This document shows, one piece after another, positions 23,837 through 45,569 of a stretch of DNA of 49,553 nt (its first letter is position 1; every line of letters begins with the position of its first letter). Source of the stretch: Girardia tigrina. Lineage: Eukaryota. The stretch covers positions 1 to 49,553 of the forward strand of contig MQRK01170520.1 in NCBI GenBank assembly GCA_001938485.1, written 5' to 3'. Both the position numbers and the translations under genes were made by a program. A model generated the notes under the pieces. It saw nothing but the letters and a program-made list of their open reading frames with translations. It was not told the origin of the DNA and made no database searches.

Positions 23837-26007
23837 AACATAATTTGCCATTATTTTTTTATTTTTTGAATTATATTTCATAAATTATGGTAAAAATGTA
23901 AAAAATTGTTTTATTATGAAATACAAAATTTCAGTAGCGTAAATTTGTTTTTAATCAAAAAAGGGATGTAGCATAATATTTTAATAATTGTGTTGATCTA
24001 CCTAAATATCTCTACAAAATTGACCGTTGTTATGATATCAGTTTTCCTACAACAATTTCTATTTATGCGTATTTTTGAACATGGGTAGGGTATCGTAAAT
24101 AAAATGTTGATATAAAGTCTTAAAACGAAGTATGAAGTCATTTCATGACCATCATTTCCTTTACAATATGTTGCTTCTATTTCTGGACTCGTTTCTCTAG
24201 AACAAGTCTTTGAATCTTTTGTGAAGGACGACCTAGACAACATTTTGGGATCTATTTTGAAGCCACAAACAAAAATGCAAAAATAATATCGAGAAACTAG
24301 TGAAAAGATTGTTTCAATGATATTTTCACATAATTATTTAATGATTTTATAATTAAAGTAATGTCGCTTATTTGTTTAAATGTTGATTACTTTGTTTTTA
24401 TGTGATAATAAAATAACTATATAAATTTATAAAGTTGTTAGAAAATATTCCTGAATGTAGTCGTATGAGACTCGGCAGCTGTGCAGAATTTCGATGATGT
24501 CGAGAGAGTACATAGCTATAATTAATGTAAGGAAAATGATAATCGTAATTTAGTAGACTTTTAATTAACGACTATTGATTTCCTGAGGACAACGAACACG
24601 TAACATTCGCATTTTCTGCGAGGTCGTGTTTGTCTCCTCAGATAAAATTTGACTAATGCACTTTACCTTTGAATTCTTCTTTTTTGAATTATAAGTTTTT
24701 GTAAAATAAATCTTACAGACGAAAGCTCAGCTGCTATTTTAGATTTTAAATGACATCTATTTCTTAAGCTACACTCGGGGATATTTTTAAGAACTCATCG
24801 TTTTATAAAGACTACTTTTTTAAAAAAAAGAAAAAAGTTTTATTATTGTTTAAATATAAATAATGAAGGTAAATTACTTCTGAAAAGTATATGCTTTATT
24901 GAGAACTTTATTATTATTATCATTATTAATTGGTTCGATTTCGAGATAATTATTTTCTTCAAATTAAAAAATAAGAATCAATTTCAAAGATTTATTAGTA
25001 TTACATAAATAAAATTAGTTAAACAAATTAATTACAAATAATTTTTAGTTATAATTTAATATTTAATTTTCTCACATCCTCCTTTCAAAAAAATTTCTTA
25101 GCTTTTCGATATTTTAATCGATCTTCATATTGTCCTTTTCAGAGACGGGTTAATATGTGAAACCGCGTCCGCAATACTGTTGACTTGATCGCCTTCGACG
25201 CCTTCGATGGCGACTGGATGACCAGCATCTATATTGTACAATCAATTACTCGATAAAGGTTGATGTTCAACCTGCCCCGTCCAGGCTATAAGTTTAATCA
25301 ACGTAGCAGTCGATTTATTCAATCGCCGGGTCGATAGCTCCGTCTCGACAGTTTTTTCTATGTGGTATTTAATGAGAACGAGAATTTTCGATAAACTTAT
25401 TTATACATGATGTAGTATAGAATTGATCCTCCATATTCCACCACTAATCAGATTGGTTTTTTTTTGTAATTTGAATTAGTATGCTTGTTTATTTTTTAAT
25501 TCACATAGTAAAAAAATTCTTTATTTTTGAATTTTTATGCTTTTAAGGAATCTTGAATTTTATGAATTTTGAAATTTTAATTTAATTTTGAATTTTTATT
25601 TTATTAATTATTAATGTAGTATTTTGATTTTTATTAATTTAGTTTTTTTGAATTTTAAATAATTTTTAATGTTGTGGAGTTGGTTTATACAAAACTCTGA
25701 AAAGTTCGAAGACGCGGTTGCTCTAGACACCGACGGGAGGCGTCGAGCGGCGACCGCGGCAAGATGAGGCGATGACCCCGTTATTGAGTCGACGTTGGCG
25801 GAAGCACGCCGTCTGTTCCCACATTGATTTGAAAGGATAGCCCGGCTCTCCGTGGCCGTCGGTGAACGGGCAGCAATCCTCTCGCTCGATAACACGTTCC
25901 TGAATGTAAGAGGAAAAAAGCGAACAGGTGAATCGTTCAACCAACCGAGTTGGGATGGCGGATTTTTGAACAGAGGGGCGGCCATCACGCCCAAACGGCC
26001 CGTCGTA

Positions 26008-26586
26008 TTTGATTTCCAATCCTTCTGGATATTCGATTGGGTCTTCTTTCATGCAAAACATTGCTTTCGTTCCTCGTTCGATCGGCTCGCTGTTATCGGA
26101 TTTGACGGTGGACGAACCGACCGCGGCCGGCTCCCACAGATACTGCTCGTCGTCGTTGCCTTTGGAAGTCACCTGAACTTTGTCAGCGACTAGATACGAT
26201 GGATAGAAACCGACACCGAATTGACCGATCATCGAGATATCGGCACCGGCTTGCAGCGCCTCTGCAAATGCCATAGTTCCAGATCTGGCGATCGTTCCAA
26301 GATTGTAGAAGAGCTCGGCTTTCGTCATGCCGATTCCTGCGTCGATGAGAGTGAGAGTGTCAGCGTCTTTGTCCGGGATGATTTTAATCATTGGTTCTTT
26401 GGCGGTGACGAGCACGGATGGATCAGTCAAGCTTTTGTAGCGGATTTTGTCAAGCGCATCGCTGGAATTGGAAATCAATTCCCGAAGGAGAATCTCTTTG
26501 TTGGAGCAGAATGTGTTGATGATTAGACTCATCAACTGGGCGATTTCGGCCTGGACTGCGAATGTCCCGGTTTCACAGTCGGACAT
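26008..26586 (-). pseudogene. hsp90: Truncated cytosolic Hsp90 (N-terminal ATPase domain only), fused in frame to unrelated sequence ending at 25723
   Basis: [56 protein letters not shown]. Homology stops at EYPEGLEIK, and many normally invariant residues are substituted. Confidence 0.9.
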
Positions 26587-26879
26587 GATTAGCGTTTGAA
26601 AGTATTTTGAATATTGCGGTTCGAGTTTTGTAAATTTGGGGTTATTTAAACAAATGTATTTTTTTTGATAATAATTTGCTTTTGATAATAATTTTTTTTG
26701 ATAATAATAATAATTTTGATAATAATTTTGATAATAATAATTTTTTTTTGAATTTTTATTTTGCATTTCGATCACTCCGTTCAAATTTTATTTTTTTTGA
26801 TCGTTTTTTTGTTATTTAAAAAAAATTATTTTGATTTTTTTTTAATTCACTACACTCTGTTTCATATTCTTTGATTCGT

Positions 26880-34874: not shown

Positions 34875-35545
34875 TTGAAGGTGAATTTCGAGAAACCGAG
34901 ATGCGATCAAAGCGCGTATTTGAGTCGAGCAGAACATTTCTTCATAACTGCAAATCATTTGAATATTTTTAAAAATTCACAAGAGCTCGAGAAAGCAAAA
35001 GAAATCGTTGTTAATTATCGACAAGGCAAAGTGAACGGTGGTCTGACAGAGGATCAATTGTGGAAAACCAAACAGATCTATGATGCGGCATTCCATCCAG
35101 AAAGGGGAAAAAGGATGATTCTCTTTGGACGAATGTCGTTCCAGGTTCCCGGCAATATGTTTATTACTGAAGGAATGCTTCAATTTTATAAGACTTGGTC
35201 GGGTGTTCTGTTTTGGCAATGGATCAATCAAACGTTTAATGCTGTAGTCAATTTCACAAACAGAAGCGGCGATAGTCAAATATCAAATTCGAGACTACCG
35301 ACATCGGGTGCTGTATCCACAACTTTGCTTATCAACAAACAAGTAGCGAATCTACCTCTTTTGGTTGGGCATCTTGTTCCTTTTGTGGCTGTGGTTACAG
35401 CTAATTGTGTCAACATACCTTGTTATGAGATCTTATGAGATCAGTACTAGTATTTCAGTGACTGATGAAAATGGAAACCATCTTGGAAACTCTTCGAAGG
35501 CCGAATCATCTCGAATATTTATGGTCATTCTTCCGATCGTCATCA
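34875..35545 (+). pseudogene. SFXN: Sideroflexin pseudogene (3'-truncated)
   Basis: PRCDQSAYLSRAEHFF, AFHPERG..MILFGRMSFQVPGNM, FWQWINQTFNAVVNFTNRSG, LVPFVAV.TANCVNIP. A frameshift leads to MR...VTDENGNHLGNS; deletions present. Confidence 0.9.
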
Positions 35546-35757
35546 ACCTGAGTCTCGAGGTGAAAATTTTAAATGTGACCCCCCGACCAGATGTTCGCTC
35601 CCCGTCGCAGGCGTGCCGCAGCCACAAAATCGCTGCGCCCGCTCTTGCACCATCAGGGTTAATTGTGTTTAAATCAAAATTTACAAATAATAAATTGGCT
35701 AATAAAAAGTGAAAGTGGAAAGAATGTTTATGATTGCAAACTACTATAGACATACTA

Positions 35758-37864: not shown

Positions 37865-38318
37865 AAGTCTAGTGATAATTTAAGCGCAATTTCCTTATGT
37901 TATTCGGTGCCCAAATATTAAAACGTTTATATCAGTATTTGACTATGATTAATTTTTTGTGACCGAACGAAAGGATATTTTTGAAAACTTTCTTCGGCAA
38001 TATTGTTCTAAATTATTGCAGGAATCGATTGGTAAATGTTTCAAGTCGCTAAGTGGACTGGTTGCCGAGATATAGGCCAAAAACTGCATTTTTTCGAGGT
38101 TTTTTGGCTTTTCCGGGAAATCCAGGAAGGAATTCCGGGAATTTTTTGGCCCACAATCATCCTCCTAACTTGCTTAACATATTTGCTTTTGGAACTAGCC
38201 CTCGATATTGCTTCGTTGTGGAGGAGATACGACTTAAAGCTGCGGACACACATCCATCAATCCACACAGAAATAACCAATTAATAATCGCAATTGTCAGT
38301 ATGGAAATTGCGCTAAAA
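37865..38318 (-). mobile_element. Helentron-associated (HINE/DINE-1-like) non-autonomous element
   Basis: Subterminal inverted repeats AGCGCAATTTCC (37883-37894) / GGAAATTGCGCT (38303-38314). A partial third copy forms a hairpin, with (GGAT)/(GT) microsatellite near the 5' end and a T-run boundary. Confidence 0.5.
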
Positions 38319-38587
38319 ACTAACCATATAAATACTAAAAAAATAATTCACAAAAATAATTGTTGGTAATTTCATTGCAACAATAAATTAAAATTTAAAT
38401 ATACACTAATACGTATATCGATTTAAAGGGCCCTTAACAAATGTTTAAATGCCCTAGTAAAAATAAAACAGGTGTAATATTAACTGTCGTTATTCATAAT
38501 ACAAAGATATTAAATCTTAAATAAAGTTTTTCGATAAAATCAATTTCTAATAATTAATATAAAATTTAATTGAGTAGTTTAATTTAG

Positions 38588-38836
38588 ATTTACTTTATCT
38601 TTATTTCTCTTCAATCTGGCTTCCTATGCAGTCATTAAGAATCAACTCACGAAAAAGAAGCATTTCTACGATTTGAATTTTCAATGTGGAGATTTATCGT
38701 TCCATGATCTGATGAAATATTTACATCGACTGATTCTCGATCCCACTATGAATAAAAAACATGTTCAATATTTACTGTCTTGCTACATAAGTGTCCGGGT
38801 TGATTGGGTTCGATTTGCTTTTTTCAATCCTAAAGA
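38588..38836 (+). CDS. CDO-like gene, exon A (start codon not located)
   Basis: tttag acceptor, open frame ...SFHDLMKYLHRLILDPTMNKKHVQYLLSCYISVRVDWVRFAFFNPK(E), donor GA|GTTAGT (phase 2). Aligns with the CDO N-terminal helices. Confidence 0.7.
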
Positions 38837-40181
38837 GTTAGTTGACATTCCTTATTTCAAAGGTTATTTATTAAACTCGAAAAATTGATAAATTTAATTT
38901 TCATAATATATAAATTATATTTTTTCCAAATTTAGCAAACTTCCTCTTTTATAAAGTATAAAGTTGAAAGATATGATTTTACCATTATCCAACATATTAA
39001 CACATTCACCACCATGGACCGCTTACTAGTATATAGTATAACTATAGTGACCATCAACACCAGAATTTATATTTTATAATTTTAGTATAAATGTGAGAGT
39101 TATTTTTAATGCTAAGTGTGTATTAATGGAAATATGTACTGACATTAAAAACGTGGTTTTTTTAAACACTATATATAAACCATGTATATAATTCTTAAAC
39201 ATTTGAGAGACAATAAATGTTTAATTAATCCAATTCGAGGTACTTCAAGAAAATAAAAATTGAAATTTGAATAAATATTACTATAATGAATAAATTTGTC
39301 TCGAAAAATCGATACTTTGGATCTTTTACTAATAATTCCATTTATTTGTTCACTGGTTTGGAATAATAAATGCGAATTTTAATATGCATTCTTTATACCC
39401 TGTACGAATTATGGCAAACAATACTCGAATATGTTAAAGTTTCATTTAACCATTTATGTTAAGTTCGAAATCAAAATTTTGAATTCGGAAATTTTTCAAT
39501 TATAAAGTTTTCATTTTAATCGTTAAACATGTATTTTCCTTTATTTTTAAAAAAATCTTTACTATACTTTTCCAATTTATTATAATAAATAAAAAAACAA
39601 AGCTTCCTTATGTTTTATATTCTTCTAAAATTTCATTTTAATACATTTTCATTTTTGATAATGATGTTTCAATAATAACATTATCATTTTAGGCTTTAAT
39701 TTAAAATATTTTTAAATTCCATTGAAAAATTTTAAATAATAAAATTAAAAAATTATGTGAACTCCCCAAAATCATAACAATTTATATTCAGATTATACAA
39801 ATTGTTAGAAAATGAATCTTAATCCGTAAAGTATTTTTTAGTGGAAAAAATAGAAAACTGATTAAATTAAAATATTTTTGAATAGGTAAATTTCATATTT
39901 AAAAGAAACTAATATTTGGTCGTATACGTTGTCTACTTGAATACCTTCTTTCAACCTTAGAGGATATTCCAATCTATGAATGTCCATTCATTAAATCTTG
40001 TAAGTTTACAAATCTTTAAAAAACTACAGCTTGCAGTTGTTAAAGAGGAAAGTTATTTTTATTCAAAGTTTCTCTATATTATGAAGATATTTATTTTTAA
40101 AAATATGACTAAAATACAATTTATTTTATATTATTTAAAATTAGATTAAAATTTATTTTTTTACTTATTAATTTTTTTAAG

Positions 40182-40309
40182 GAAATACGCCAAAAACATA
40201 ATAGAAATATGTGATCATTATATTATCTTTTTAATATGTTGGAACGCAGGCAGTGTGAGTTTGGATACGGAAAATATTAACAAAAACTGTTTTCTTAAAG
40301 TATTAAAAG
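40182..40309 (+). CDS. CDO-like gene, exon B
   Basis: KYAKNIIEICDHYIIFLICWNAGSVSLDTENINKNCFLKVLK compared with CDO RYTRNLV...LMILCWGEG...HCFLKMLQ. Phase-compatible acceptor and G|GTAAGT donor. Confidence 0.8.
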
Positions 40310-40353
40310 GTAAGTCTGTTTGAGAACATATTAAAAACTTATTAAAATTAAAG

Positions 40354-40446
40354 GTCGAATCAATGAAACTATATACGACAGTAAAGAAAAAACAAATGCC
40401 ATTTCGCAGAAGATTTACGATGTAAATATGGTTGGATTTATTGAAG
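40354..40446 (+). CDS. CDO-like gene, exon C
   Basis: After a 44-nt intron: GRINETIYDSKEKTNAISQKIYDVNMVGFIE, compared with CDO GNLKETLF...ENQCAYIND. Donor G|GTATAT. Confidence 0.75.
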
Positions 40447-40835
40447 GTATATTAAGACAGTAATAAAATTTGATAAAATAACTCAAAAAGTATTGTTCCA
40501 TTTTATATAATAACCCATAGTTTTAGTTTAGCGATTTCAATGTACGTTTCGGGTTTTCTACATCAAAATGGTCTTTAAAATGTGGGACTAAAACTACAGT
40601 TCCTTTTCTAAAGTCGAAAATCAGTAATTTTAACAATAAGTTTGTTAAGAGAACTCCAACATTTGACAGAACATTTATTACATTCACAATTTTGATCATT
40701 TCTATAACGATTGCTATCCCTTAAATCCATCAATCAATGTTTAATACTTCTCGTTCCAATCTGAACTAACTTGAAGAAAATTATTTTCTTTTAATTATTT
40801 AATTTAAATTTTATTGGATAAAATAAAATTATTTT

Positions 40836-41433
40836 TTACAAGCTTTTATTACGTTTCATTTGTTTGTTTGTTTGTTTGTCTGTATGGATCAAATCTTGCG
40901 ATCGAAATTTCACCCACTTCCCGTTGTGCTGGTGACTTGAAATTTTCAGGAGTGATGTATTCTAGATGACAATACACTTTTCCTTGAAAATTTTTGAAAA
41001 AAAATATTTTTTTTAATTTATTTTGCAAAAAAACCACTTACGATTATCTNNNNNNNNNNNNNNNNNNNNNNNNNNNNNNNNNNNNNNNNNNNNNNNNNNN
41101 NNNNNNNNNNNNNNNAATTCATCCACTTCCCATTCACCTAGCGACATGAAACTTTCAGGATGGATGTATTCTAGGTGACAATACACTTTTTCACTGTCAC
41201 TGCTCATCTACCGCCTTTAGTTTGGCCACAAAAATGTAATTAAAGTGTCGTTCTCATGTTTTCCTCAGTAGTAGGCTTTGAAATTTGCTACATCTAAATG
41301 CAAATAGAAAGTGGGTTTTCACCTAATAGGCTTTGATAATTCAGTCAAAAAATGTGGGAAGTGGGTGAAATAGATACAGAACCGCAAATATATGACAAAT
41401 TATAAAAGCTTGTACACCAAAAAATTTTTTGGT
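40836..41433 (+). mobile_element. HINE/DINE-1-like (Helentron-associated) element inside a CDO-like intron; spans an N gap
   Basis: TACAAGCTTTTAT ... ATAAAAGCTTGTA subterminal IRs, (TTTG)n tract near the 5' end, internal IR tttcacccacttccc/gggaagtgggtgaaa, a duplicated internal unit and a 3' hairpin ACCAAAAAATTTTTTGGT. Confidence 0.65.
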
Positions 41434-41950
41434 ATGATATTATTATAATCATTTTTAAACATTAATTTGATTTTAATCAACACTTTAATAAAAATTTTAA
41501 CTGACTTGTTAATTTCAATTTTTAGAAAAGCTGGAATTTGATAAAGCTTCAACATATTAAATTGATGTTTCTATATATAGCTGCGAAAATCACATTAAAA
41601 TCCCAAAACTGTAGCAGGACTGTGTGCAGATTGCTAGAATGAACATGAAAATATCTTGCATATTTCACAGAAAGAAAGTACGACACTGTCGAAGGAAATA
41701 AATGTAAAAAAGAACATCAAAAAGAGCTAAAATGGTCAGAAAGTTATTTCTCATATTGCCATTGACAATATTCAAAAACCGTTATGGTGAGGGATACAAG
41801 TTATAACAGTAATTACCAAAATTTATTGAAAAATATTTTTTATTCATAATTAATAACAAAATCATTTTTAATAAGATTCTACAAATCAAAATTTGCATCA
41901 GTTCATTTTAATTCTATTTACTTATAAAATACCCATGAAAAAAGGATTAA

Positions 41951-42183
41951 CCCTTCGTAACTCAATATCTTCAAAAAATACCACACAATGTAATAGAGAG
42001 AACTGTCAAATTCATCATCCTACCACCAACGCCACCTGTAGGTACTAATAAATCAGCGATGTTGTATAGATCGGTGTGTAACAGATATGCAACAGTGATT
42101 TAAAATGTGATATGTTAGTAGTTAGAGATCCTGTAAGAGTTACAACGGTTTGCTACAGAAGTGTCACACCATGTTACGAAAGG
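41951..42183. mobile_element. piggyBac-like MITE (intronic)
   Basis: TTAA|CCCTTCGTAAC ... GTTACGAAAGG|TTAA. Confidence 0.8.
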
Positions 42184-42401
42184 TTAATTTAAATTGCGAA
42201 TTCAATTTTTTAATAACGTTTTTTCTTAGATAAAGGAAATGATAATAGAGAAACCTGTTTATACGAGTTTACATTAAATTTTAGTAGTATTGATTACTTT
42301 AAACGCTACACAATATAATGAAATATAATATGTTTCATTACATAATAATCTTTATATTCTACAGTATTTGCTATTATTGCTGATATGGTAATGATATTCA
42401 G

Positions 42402-42607
42402 GCCTAAAAGGAAATCACTTATTAAGTAACGGAAGTAGCAAAGAGGAAGCGGTCTCCTTGCACGTATTTTCTCCTCATTTTGTAACTTCTCCAAATCAAA
42501 CAAGAAGTCAAATGATTCTCTCTGAATTACATTTCTATAGCAAAAATGGAAGACTGCTAAGGTTTGATAGGACATGTGTTATTATTTGTTTAAATGTTGT
42601 TTTTTAA
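42402..42607 (+). CDS. CDO-like gene, exon D
   Basis: ttcag acceptor in matching phase. (G)LKGNHLLSNGSSKEEAVSLHVFSPHF...LHFYSKNG compared with CDO SIGLHRVEN.SH.EPAVSLHLYSPPF...TFHSKFG. Ends at TAA 42605-42607, or possibly at a donor near 42562. Confidence 0.8.
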
Positions 42608-42714
42608 TATAAACATAATTATCTAAATAATTAATTGTGCGTCTTTCATAGATAAAGTTAAGAAAGTTTATGTTTCCTTGAATATTAAAATCTAGATATC
42701 TAAAATGCTATATA

Positions 42715-42884
42715 CAGTAAAATCCGATTAATCCGAAATGTTAAATCACACGAATATTTTTTCGGTATAGCCGGAATTCGGATTAACAGGAGTCAGATTA
42801 ACCGGATTTAACAGTATAAAAAATAATTCCGTGAATATAAATTTATTCGGTTTATCCGGATTCACGGATTAGCCGGTTTTACTG
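42715..42884. mobile_element. pogo/Tigger-like MITE
   Basis: TA|CAGTAAAATCCGATTAATCCG ... CGGATTAGCCGGTTTTACTG|TA, with internal cggatta repeats. Confidence 0.85.
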
Positions 42885-43209: not shown

Positions 43210-45569
43210 CCAATAATAATAATCATATATTTGAATACACTACCATTTCGTGAATATTTAAACAAGGAATTATAATCAATGTAATTTAATATTTCGTTTA
43301 ATATCACATTCCCCTCTTCAAAATCATCTGTATATCGATCTCGGATTCCACGTACTTCTGGTAGGGTATCTTCTCTCTTTGACTTGAGCCGTTTCATTGC
43401 CCTTTTTTCTCCAAGTTCGTATACTGGTCTGAGCCTTTGTTTCCCAACGTTTTTTTTCTTCGGTTTTTTTCACTTTTTTTTAATCTGGTTCTAGATACGT
43501 TGTATTTCTTTATTCACCCCTTCATGGTATAAAATGAATGTCCAGTCGTCAATAATTCTCCTGATAACGAATGGTCCAATGTAATTATTTTCAAATCCTT
43601 GTGCTCCTTCATTTATGACCATAACTTTCTGCACGACTTGTAGTTTTGCGTTCCACCGATGCTTGGCATCCCTTAATTTATCTCTTTCATTCTGGTCTCT
43701 CAAATTTTTAGTGATGAATTCGTGGACTATTTTTATCTTACTTCTCATTTCATTCACACATTCATCTGTGCTGTGATATTCTGCGTCCTAGAAGAGTTCA
43801 AAGTGAATGAAGTTGATTCTTGGTTTGCGTCCAAACAACACTTTGGTATGGGGAATACTTATTGGTTTTTTATTTTGTTGTTCGTATACCCAGTTGTATG
43901 AATAGTAGTGTTTCACTCCAGTCTTGAATTTTTCTTTCCACCATCACTGATCAGTGGTTTTAACGTTTGGAACAACCTTTCTATTATTCCATTTCCCTGT
44001 GGATAGTATGGTGAAGTAAACGTCTTCTTAATTCTCAGTGCTCGACAGTGTTCAATAAATAAATTTAATGTAAAATTCGAGTGTATTTATTCTGGAATCC
44101 CAAATTTTGATATCCAATGAATCCATAGATTTTTAATCATCTTTTCTGCTGTCATTGAATTTATCAGTATTAAGCATACGTATTTCCAGAAATAGTCGAT
44201 CACACCAAGGATATATCGGTATCCATTTCTAGTGCTTGTAAATGGTCCTGTGATATCTATTCCGATTACTTCAAATGGCTTTTTGGTAATCAAGTCTTGT
44301 AATGGCGCTTTAATTCTTCCATTGATATTTCTGTTTTGAATGCATGGTATGTATTTACTTAAGATTTCTTTTATATCTTTCACCATAATCCACCAGTAAT
44401 GATTTTTTTGTAAAAGCATCGGCTGTTTTTTTAATCCTGGGTGTCTCAATTGTCGGTGGTAGTTCCGAATTATTTCCCGTCTTTGTGTTTTGGCATGATT
44501 ACTCTATAGATTCCGTCCTTGAATAAATATATAATATCCCCACGAATTCTGATTTCATGTCCATCGGACTGATGTTTTGTTTACTCGTCTTTGTAGGTTA
44601 TTCGATTCAGTAACTTCCGTAACTCTTCATCTGTTTCCTGCTCCCACTCGTTTGGACTCTCGTCATTTTGATTTTAAATTTCATTGACAATTTTTCTGAA
44701 TATTCGCTATGAGTTTTCACTTTCTATGCATAATTTTCTTCTTTGGATCTTCTTGTCGTAGGGTACACTGTTCACATGGTGCTGGTCTTGAAAGAGCATC
44801 GGCATTATTGTAGTCCTCTCCTTTTCTGAATTCTATATCCATATCAAATATTTCGGGTTCTTATTTCCGAATATAGTACTGTGATATGTTTGATATATTC
44901 CATTTTAAAAGCTATTTTAATGCCTGATAATCCGTCCTGTCAAGAAAATGTGATCCTATCAAGTAGTGTTTAAATTTCAAAACAAACGTATGGATGGCTA
45001 GCAATTAGTTTCAAGTAATACAATATTATCACTGACTCTTACTTAGTGTTTTCGAGACATAATAAATAATTCATTCTTCTCCATTTTGAATTTGTGATAA
45101 TACTGCACAAAATTTAATCAAGGGATACGTCCGTATCTAGAATATATTTACCATCTTTTATAGGTAAAGCTAACTCAGGAAATTGTGTGAGATGTTCCTT
45201 GAGTCTGTAAAACATACTACTCGATTCGTCTGTCCACACAAATTTAGACTCGTTTTTTAACATTAAACTTAAATGACTGGATATTACAGCATAATCCTTG
45301 ATAAACCTGCGATAATAGTGGCAAAATCCCAAGAATTTTTGTTATTCTTAGTTGCAGCCTGGTAACTTTCATTATTTGATGCTCTTGATTTTATCAGGAT
45401 ATGTCTTCACGCAGAGCGCAGGTACGCTGTCAAAAAGGAAATTTTGTTATAAGACAAAGTTATAATGGTGTTTACAATAATAATCAGATATTTGAATACA
45501 CTACCATTTCGTGAATATTTAAACAAACAATTATAATCAATGTTATTAAATATTTCATTTTATATCACA
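43210..45569 (-). mobile_element. Internally deleted Gypsy element with short LTRs (45445-45569 and ~43210-43308), retaining RT end, RNase H and integrase
   Basis: Direct repeats start TGTGATAT; PPT GAAGAGGGGAA precedes the 3' LTR. Motifs GFCHYYRRFIKDYA, YILDTD, PFEVIGIDITGP, IDYF.K, KFGIPE, TSPYYPQGNG, YIGPF. Confidence 0.88.

Follow-up and report, generated by a model that had tools for sequence, protein, structure and literature searches.

We identified an expressed and spliced paralog of cysteine dioxygenase (CDO) that lacks two of the three iron-binding histidines, encoded on contig MQRK01170520.1 of the Girardia tigrina genome assembly (GCA_001938485.1). The whole stretch of DNA analyzed, positions 1 to 49,553 of the forward strand (49,553 nucleotides, nt), is referred to here as the window; its content of guanine and cytosine (GC) is 30%. 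In animals, CDO controls the level of cysteine and the synthesis of taurine. In CDO1, iron is bound by H86, H88 and H140, C93 and Y157 are cross-linked, R60 binds the substrate carboxylate, and S153, H155 and Y157 form a triad. The initial annotation, made from the letters of the window alone, placed a CDO-like gene at 38588–42607 (+) and read it as a candidate metal-free CDO paralog. Given the established roles of these residues, and because only H140 is left of the iron ligands and Y157 is lost, we predict that the protein is not a cysteine dioxygenase.

Homology searches were made exon by exon. Three exons match the Pfam family CDO_I (PF05995), to which CDO1 belongs, in colinear order: exon 1 at profile positions 11–55, exon 2 at 58–98 and exon 4 at 139–163. 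Each single-exon score (Table 1) is below the gathering score of 23 bits, and the rough sum is ~44 bits. Exon 3 has no Pfam match or other homology signal of its own. The colinear matches, together with intron positions and phases as in a canonical paralog of the same genome (see below), support the proposed membership of this family.

Searches with phmmer against the CDO1 chains in PDB placed residues 2–41 of exon 2 on CDO1 residues 58–98, and residues 3–30 of exon 4 on CDO1 residues 138–165. Anchors shared with CDO1 (PDB 2b5h, 2ic1 and 6bpr) are Y58, C76-W77, C93-F-L-K, G138-x-H140, N144 and S153-x-H155. The stretch from C76-W77 to C93-F-L-K aligns without gaps, and the substitutions are therefore firm. 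These alignments show that the residue mapping of the initial annotation was correct: H86T, H88N, R60K and Y157F are replaced, and Y58, W77, C93, H140, S153 and H155 are kept, as are C76 and N144.

Unlike CDO1, the window copy has an incomplete 3-His facial triad: T86 and N88 in place of histidine remove two of the three Fe ligands and leave only H140. The Cys93-Tyr157 pair and the S153-H155-Y157 triad are also incomplete, as C93, S153 and H155 are present and Phe at position 157 removes the partner of the Cys-Tyr cross-link. In the pair that binds the substrate carboxylate, Y58 is kept and the binding residue itself is altered (R60 to Lys). Further differences from CDO1 are a deletion of ~8 amino acids after the PxF motif and a shorter N-terminus. 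Bacterial Gln-type CDO homologues and 3-mercaptopropionate dioxygenases have the CDO fold and resemble the window copy in having a changed residue at the Arg60 position. However, they are active enzymes with the 3-His iron site that the window copy lacks.

With H140 alone, a mononuclear iron site as in CDO would not be formed, and without Tyr157 the Cys-Tyr cofactor would not be formed either. The former substrate pocket may still accommodate a small ligand, as Y58, K60, C93, S153 and H155 all remain; if the barrel folds, the pocket lined by these residues could hold an amino-acid-like ligand without turnover.

The gene structure was largely predicted correctly. Each of the four exons first proposed (38588–38836, 40182–40309, 40354–40446 and 42402–42607) is preceded by AG and followed by GT. 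The codons split across the junctions are compatible, giving Glu between exons 1 and 2 (GA/G), Gly between exons 2 and 3 (G/GT) and Gly between exons 3 and 4 (G/GC), and the intron phases are 2, 1 and 1. The single stop-free frame is borne out, with 165 whole codons from the ATG at 38712 to position 42559 (donor at 42561). Shuffling of each exon gives a joint chance of ~5e-7 for a stop-free frame, and the remaining five frames of the same exons contain 0–6 stops per exon.

A search of sequencing runs revealed transcription of the gene; in four runs (X1–X4), all of one sample and one study, a fifth of the sampled words were present. Contigs from X1 and X4 were placed on window positions 38300–42800. 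Each of the two runs gave one contig (X1, 651 nt at depth 14; X4, 718 nt at depth 11.5). The contigs cover 38568 (X1) or 38572 (X4) to 38836, 40182–40309, 40354–40446 and 42402–42561 with 0–1 differences from the window. The skipped stretches, of 1345, 44 and 1955 bases, are each bounded by GT and AG. In X1, unique intron sequence has depth zero, whereas the exons have depth 14. Mature spliced mRNA is thus present in both runs, and the three predicted junctions are seen in it. Retention of intron 2 was considered and rejected, as it would bring in an in-frame stop and the intron is skipped in the RNA. The X4 contig differs from the genome at 40269 (G to A, synonymous, Thr) and at 42483 (T to C, Val to Ala); these are probably alleles.

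A six-frame PF05995 search of the whole 1.43 Gb genome assembly showed that canonical His-triad CDO, the presence of which the initial annotation had proposed to check, exists elsewhere in the genome as at least two genes. At least two canonical sequence types were found, one on contigs C160324/C160325/C224430 with C57136/C98428/C57135, and the other on C232308 and C254399. The canonical exons keep R60, H86, H88, C93, H140, S153, H155 and Y157. The window copy shares the family and the exon-intron plan with these paralogs, but R60, H86, H88 and Y157, which are kept there, are replaced in it. Its intron positions and phases are identical to those of canonical paralog A (C160324/C57136), and thus the gene arose from animal CDO by duplication at the DNA level, not by retrocopying. 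Per exon, it is ~20–45% identical to the canonical copies, and each window exon is single-copy in the assembly. This duplicate has diverged far from the canonical copies, with transcription, splicing and the open frame persisting.

Two other CDO-like fragments, both of exon 2, are present in the assembly (C225098:8077–8229 and C31074:980–1093). They have several in-frame stops and have partly lost the His motif. These are dead CDO copies, and the stops that they carry show that dead copies in this genome do decay. Canonical CDO exons are found in identical form on two or three short contigs each (C160324, C160325 and C224430; C57135, C57136 and C98428; C41247 and C193064), which points to haplotypes left uncollapsed in a fragmented assembly or to very recent duplicates.

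Exon 4 (52 amino acids) was scored against 1.84 billion representative proteins. Four pass the threshold of E 0.001, and only one of the four, P0001 (UniParc UPI000606E2FD), is a real close relative. P0002 and P0004 were set aside as low-complexity noise, and P0003, from a protist, is a canonical CDO protein with four domains. P0001 has 82 amino acids, scores 66.8 bits and is 63–67% identical to window exon 4. It begins with the last residues of exon 3 and then runs ungapped through exon 4. H140, S153 and H155 are kept in it, and it has in common with the window copy both Y157F and the deletion of ~8 amino acids after the PxF motif. The best match to P0001 in the window genome is window exon 4, at only 63% identity; P0001 is not encoded in this genome, and thus is from another species. 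No contig encoding it is on record. Word-index protein searches returned only P0001 itself when it was the query, and no match for the open frames of exon 1 and exon 2.

Because Y157F is common to the window copy and P0001, the loss of catalysis appears to be old. Judged from these two proteins, the loss of Tyr157 would be older than the split from the P0001 species, and both frames would have been open afterwards.

The two outer ends of the gene differ from those first proposed. Position 38588 is not the coding start: an in-frame TAA at 38580 is part of the transcript, which starts at or before 38568, and the open frame runs from 38583 onward. Since the RNA contigs begin upstream of this TAA, translation must begin after it. 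An ATG in frame first occurs at 38712, at about the position of residue 16 in human CDO1 and of residue 22 in canonical paralog A. This ATG is preceded by three out-of-frame upstream ATGs (uATGs), at 38626 (an upstream open reading frame of 16 codons), 38684 (7 codons) and 38704 (2 codons). No in-frame ATG is found at the canonical start, the 43 codons before 38712 are open and still similar to the canonical N-terminus, and the ATG of paralog A is located within exon 1. Thus, the window copy appears to have lost its ancestral start codon. We rejected an additional coding exon farther upstream, spliced in at the AG at 38630–38631, as the RNA contigs cross this site unbroken and paralog A has its ATG in exon 1.

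At the other end, exon 4 does not run to 42607 in the RNA. Both contigs stop matching the genome at 42561 (AG/GTTTGA), and the X4 contig continues for 72 further letters without a match to the examined stretch (38300–42800). This departure at a donor makes a further, fifth exon likely and throws doubt on the stop at 42607. P0001 departs from the window read-through exactly after GRLLR and has a different tail. A search for exon 5 with this tail gave no match in the window or the genome. An acceptor candidate at 42651, which would give '...GRLLR-stop', is not claimed here, as there is no such joint in the reads.

Table 1. Features of the CDO-like gene (window coordinates)
Feature	Position	Strand	Remarks
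Exon 1, 5' untranslated part	38568..38711	+	RNA contig starts at 38568 (X1) and 38572 (X4)
Exon 1, coding part	38712..38836	+	First in-frame ATG to phase-2 donor GA/GTTAGT; CDO_I 14.1 bits
Intron 1	38837..40181	+	1345 nt, GT..AG, 21% GC
Exon 2	40182..40309	+	Cupin motif 1: Y58, K60, C76-W77, T86, N88, C93; CDO_I 12.8 bits
Intron 2	40310..40353	+	44 nt, GT..AG; in-frame stop if retained
Exon 3	40354..40446	+	31 codons including split codons; in RNA contigs
Intron 3	40447..42401	+	1955 nt as assembled, GT..AG; high-copy repeats and assembly gap
Exon 4	42402..42561	+	H140, N144, S153, H155, F157; ends at donor AG/GTTTGA; CDO_I 16.9 bits
Read-through tail to TAA	42562..42607	+	Exon 4 end as proposed; probably intronic in main transcript

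We see about an even chance that the gene encodes a retained, non-catalytic CDO-fold protein, maintained from before the divergence of the P0001 species; its translation, folding and selective retention are what we infer. In favor of retention, the frame has stayed open through very deep divergence in AT-rich DNA with all splice sites working, and the dead CDO copies of the same genome did gather stops. It is also possible, at somewhat less than even chances, that this is an incipient pseudogene: a transcribed paralog free of protein-level constraint, in which the start and the catalytic residues are lost, the splice sites are intact by chance and no stop has yet arisen. The loss of four active-site residues, the surrounding decayed elements and the absence of any relative besides P0001 in very large protein sets are consistent with such decay. 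However, at ~20–45% identity to the canonical paralogs, 165 AT-rich codons carry no stop or frameshift, unlike the true dead copies with their several stops, and with Y157F common to another species the loss would be old and both frames open since. In a rough neutral simulation scaled to the P0001 divergence, the probability of no stop in the window lineage is ~0.1, and ~0.004 when one indel per ten substitutions is assumed; these figures are assumption-dependent.

Several points weigh against retention, some of which speak directly for decay. The ancestral ATG is missing, and the ATG at 38712, behind a 144-nt leader with three uATGs, removes ~15–20 N-terminal residues; the uATGs would argue for weak translation. 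The C-terminal end of the predicted protein is provisional, given the doubtful stop at 42607. Exon GC (26–35%) is only slightly above intron GC (20–29%). Expression was observed only in a single sample from a single study, the two X4 variants (one synonymous, one Val to Ala) give no statistical power, and the neutral simulation hangs on the assumed indel rate. The only relative is an 82-amino-acid fragment that starts inside exon 3 and is known as protein without DNA, which allows no ratio of nonsynonymous to synonymous substitution rates (dN/dS). Thus, the proposal of a metal-free CDO paralog stands as to family, splicing, lost ligands, canonical copies elsewhere and a relative sharing Y157F, whereas the selection that the initial annotation took an open frame to suggest is no more than plausible.

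An improbable alternative to a non-catalytic protein is that the gene product is still an enzyme, with a remodelled metal site or a metal-free pocket and a different chemistry or substrate. H140, C93, Y58, S153 and H155 are kept, K60 retains the positive charge, and the positions of the lost histidines have acidic neighbors (D85 and E87). However, Y157F removes the Cys-Tyr cofactor, and there is no known mononuclear iron site formed from one His alone. In the ungapped CW-CFLK stretch, D85 and E87 are out of register with H86 and H88, and β-strand geometry would point them away from the pocket. The ungapped alignment between two conserved anchors also led us to reject a shift of register in which D85 and E87 would serve as metal ligands. 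Finally, the RNA nature of runs X1–X4 is only guessed, but it is very improbable that the joined contigs derive from a processed DNA copy or a mis-assembly instead of RNA of this locus: every exon is single-copy in the 1.43 Gb assembly, which leaves no retrocopy as their source, unique intron sequence has zero depth in X1 against an exon depth of 14, and the contigs are nearly identical to the window (0–1 differences) with GT..AG ends at each skip.

The description of the gene as lying amid decayed transposable elements holds, given the repeats that fill intron 3, an integrase fragment downstream of the gene and, upstream of it, a frame-shifted sideroflexin retrocopy. The intronless sideroflexin copy (34875–35709, +) is ~3 kb upstream of the CDO copy. 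Its 187-amino-acid open frame corresponds to positions 2–192 of the SFXNs profile (218 bits), and profile positions 191–233 are matched in another frame, which gives the copy the appearance of a processed pseudogene with a frameshift. The integrase-core (rve_3) fragment at 43958–44059 (−), with surroundings at 43300–44900, is part of a decayed retroelement. Farther away, a 353-amino-acid open frame (25726–26784, −) has a weak HATPase_c_3 match (28.8 bits).

The repeats of intron 3 (40565–41621 and 41924–42225) reach a contig depth of up to ~36,000 in X4. Two leaf-litter metatranscriptomes (X5 and X6) contain them as well, some pieces without differences, which points to leaf litter as a habitat of the organism or of a close relative; these two data sets match the intron 3 repeats only, and not the gene. 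An assembly gap (41050–41115) inside intron 3 lies between two copies of a 73-nt direct repeat (40909–40981 and 41118–41190, 84% identical), and the tandem repeat is probably its cause. The gap has no bearing on the frame because the spliced RNA skips it.

Pseudoenzymes, and non-enzymatic cupins such as the seed storage cupins, keep an enzyme fold and have lost catalytic or metal-binding residues. The window gene resembles pseudoenzymes in general in that it is homologous to an enzyme family, lacks catalytic residues and produces mature mRNA. Catalytically dead duplicates are common across enzyme families, and any function of the window copy is putative. No CDO-family member without the His ligands is described in the literature searched, and to our knowledge the described members of the family all keep the 3-His iron site.

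If the gene is drifting, it is an ordinary decaying duplicate and chiefly an annotation warning, as a CDO_I match in this genome is not always a cysteine dioxygenase. If it is retained, the CDO cupin pocket would be reusable for something other than oxidation, and the thiol dioxygenases would join the enzyme families known to produce pseudoenzymes. More specifically, an iron-free CDO-fold protein may be under selection in a soil-invertebrate lineage, where it would bind or sense cysteine or another thiol. We consider this role rather unlikely; if true, it would give the thiol dioxygenase family its first pseudoenzyme.

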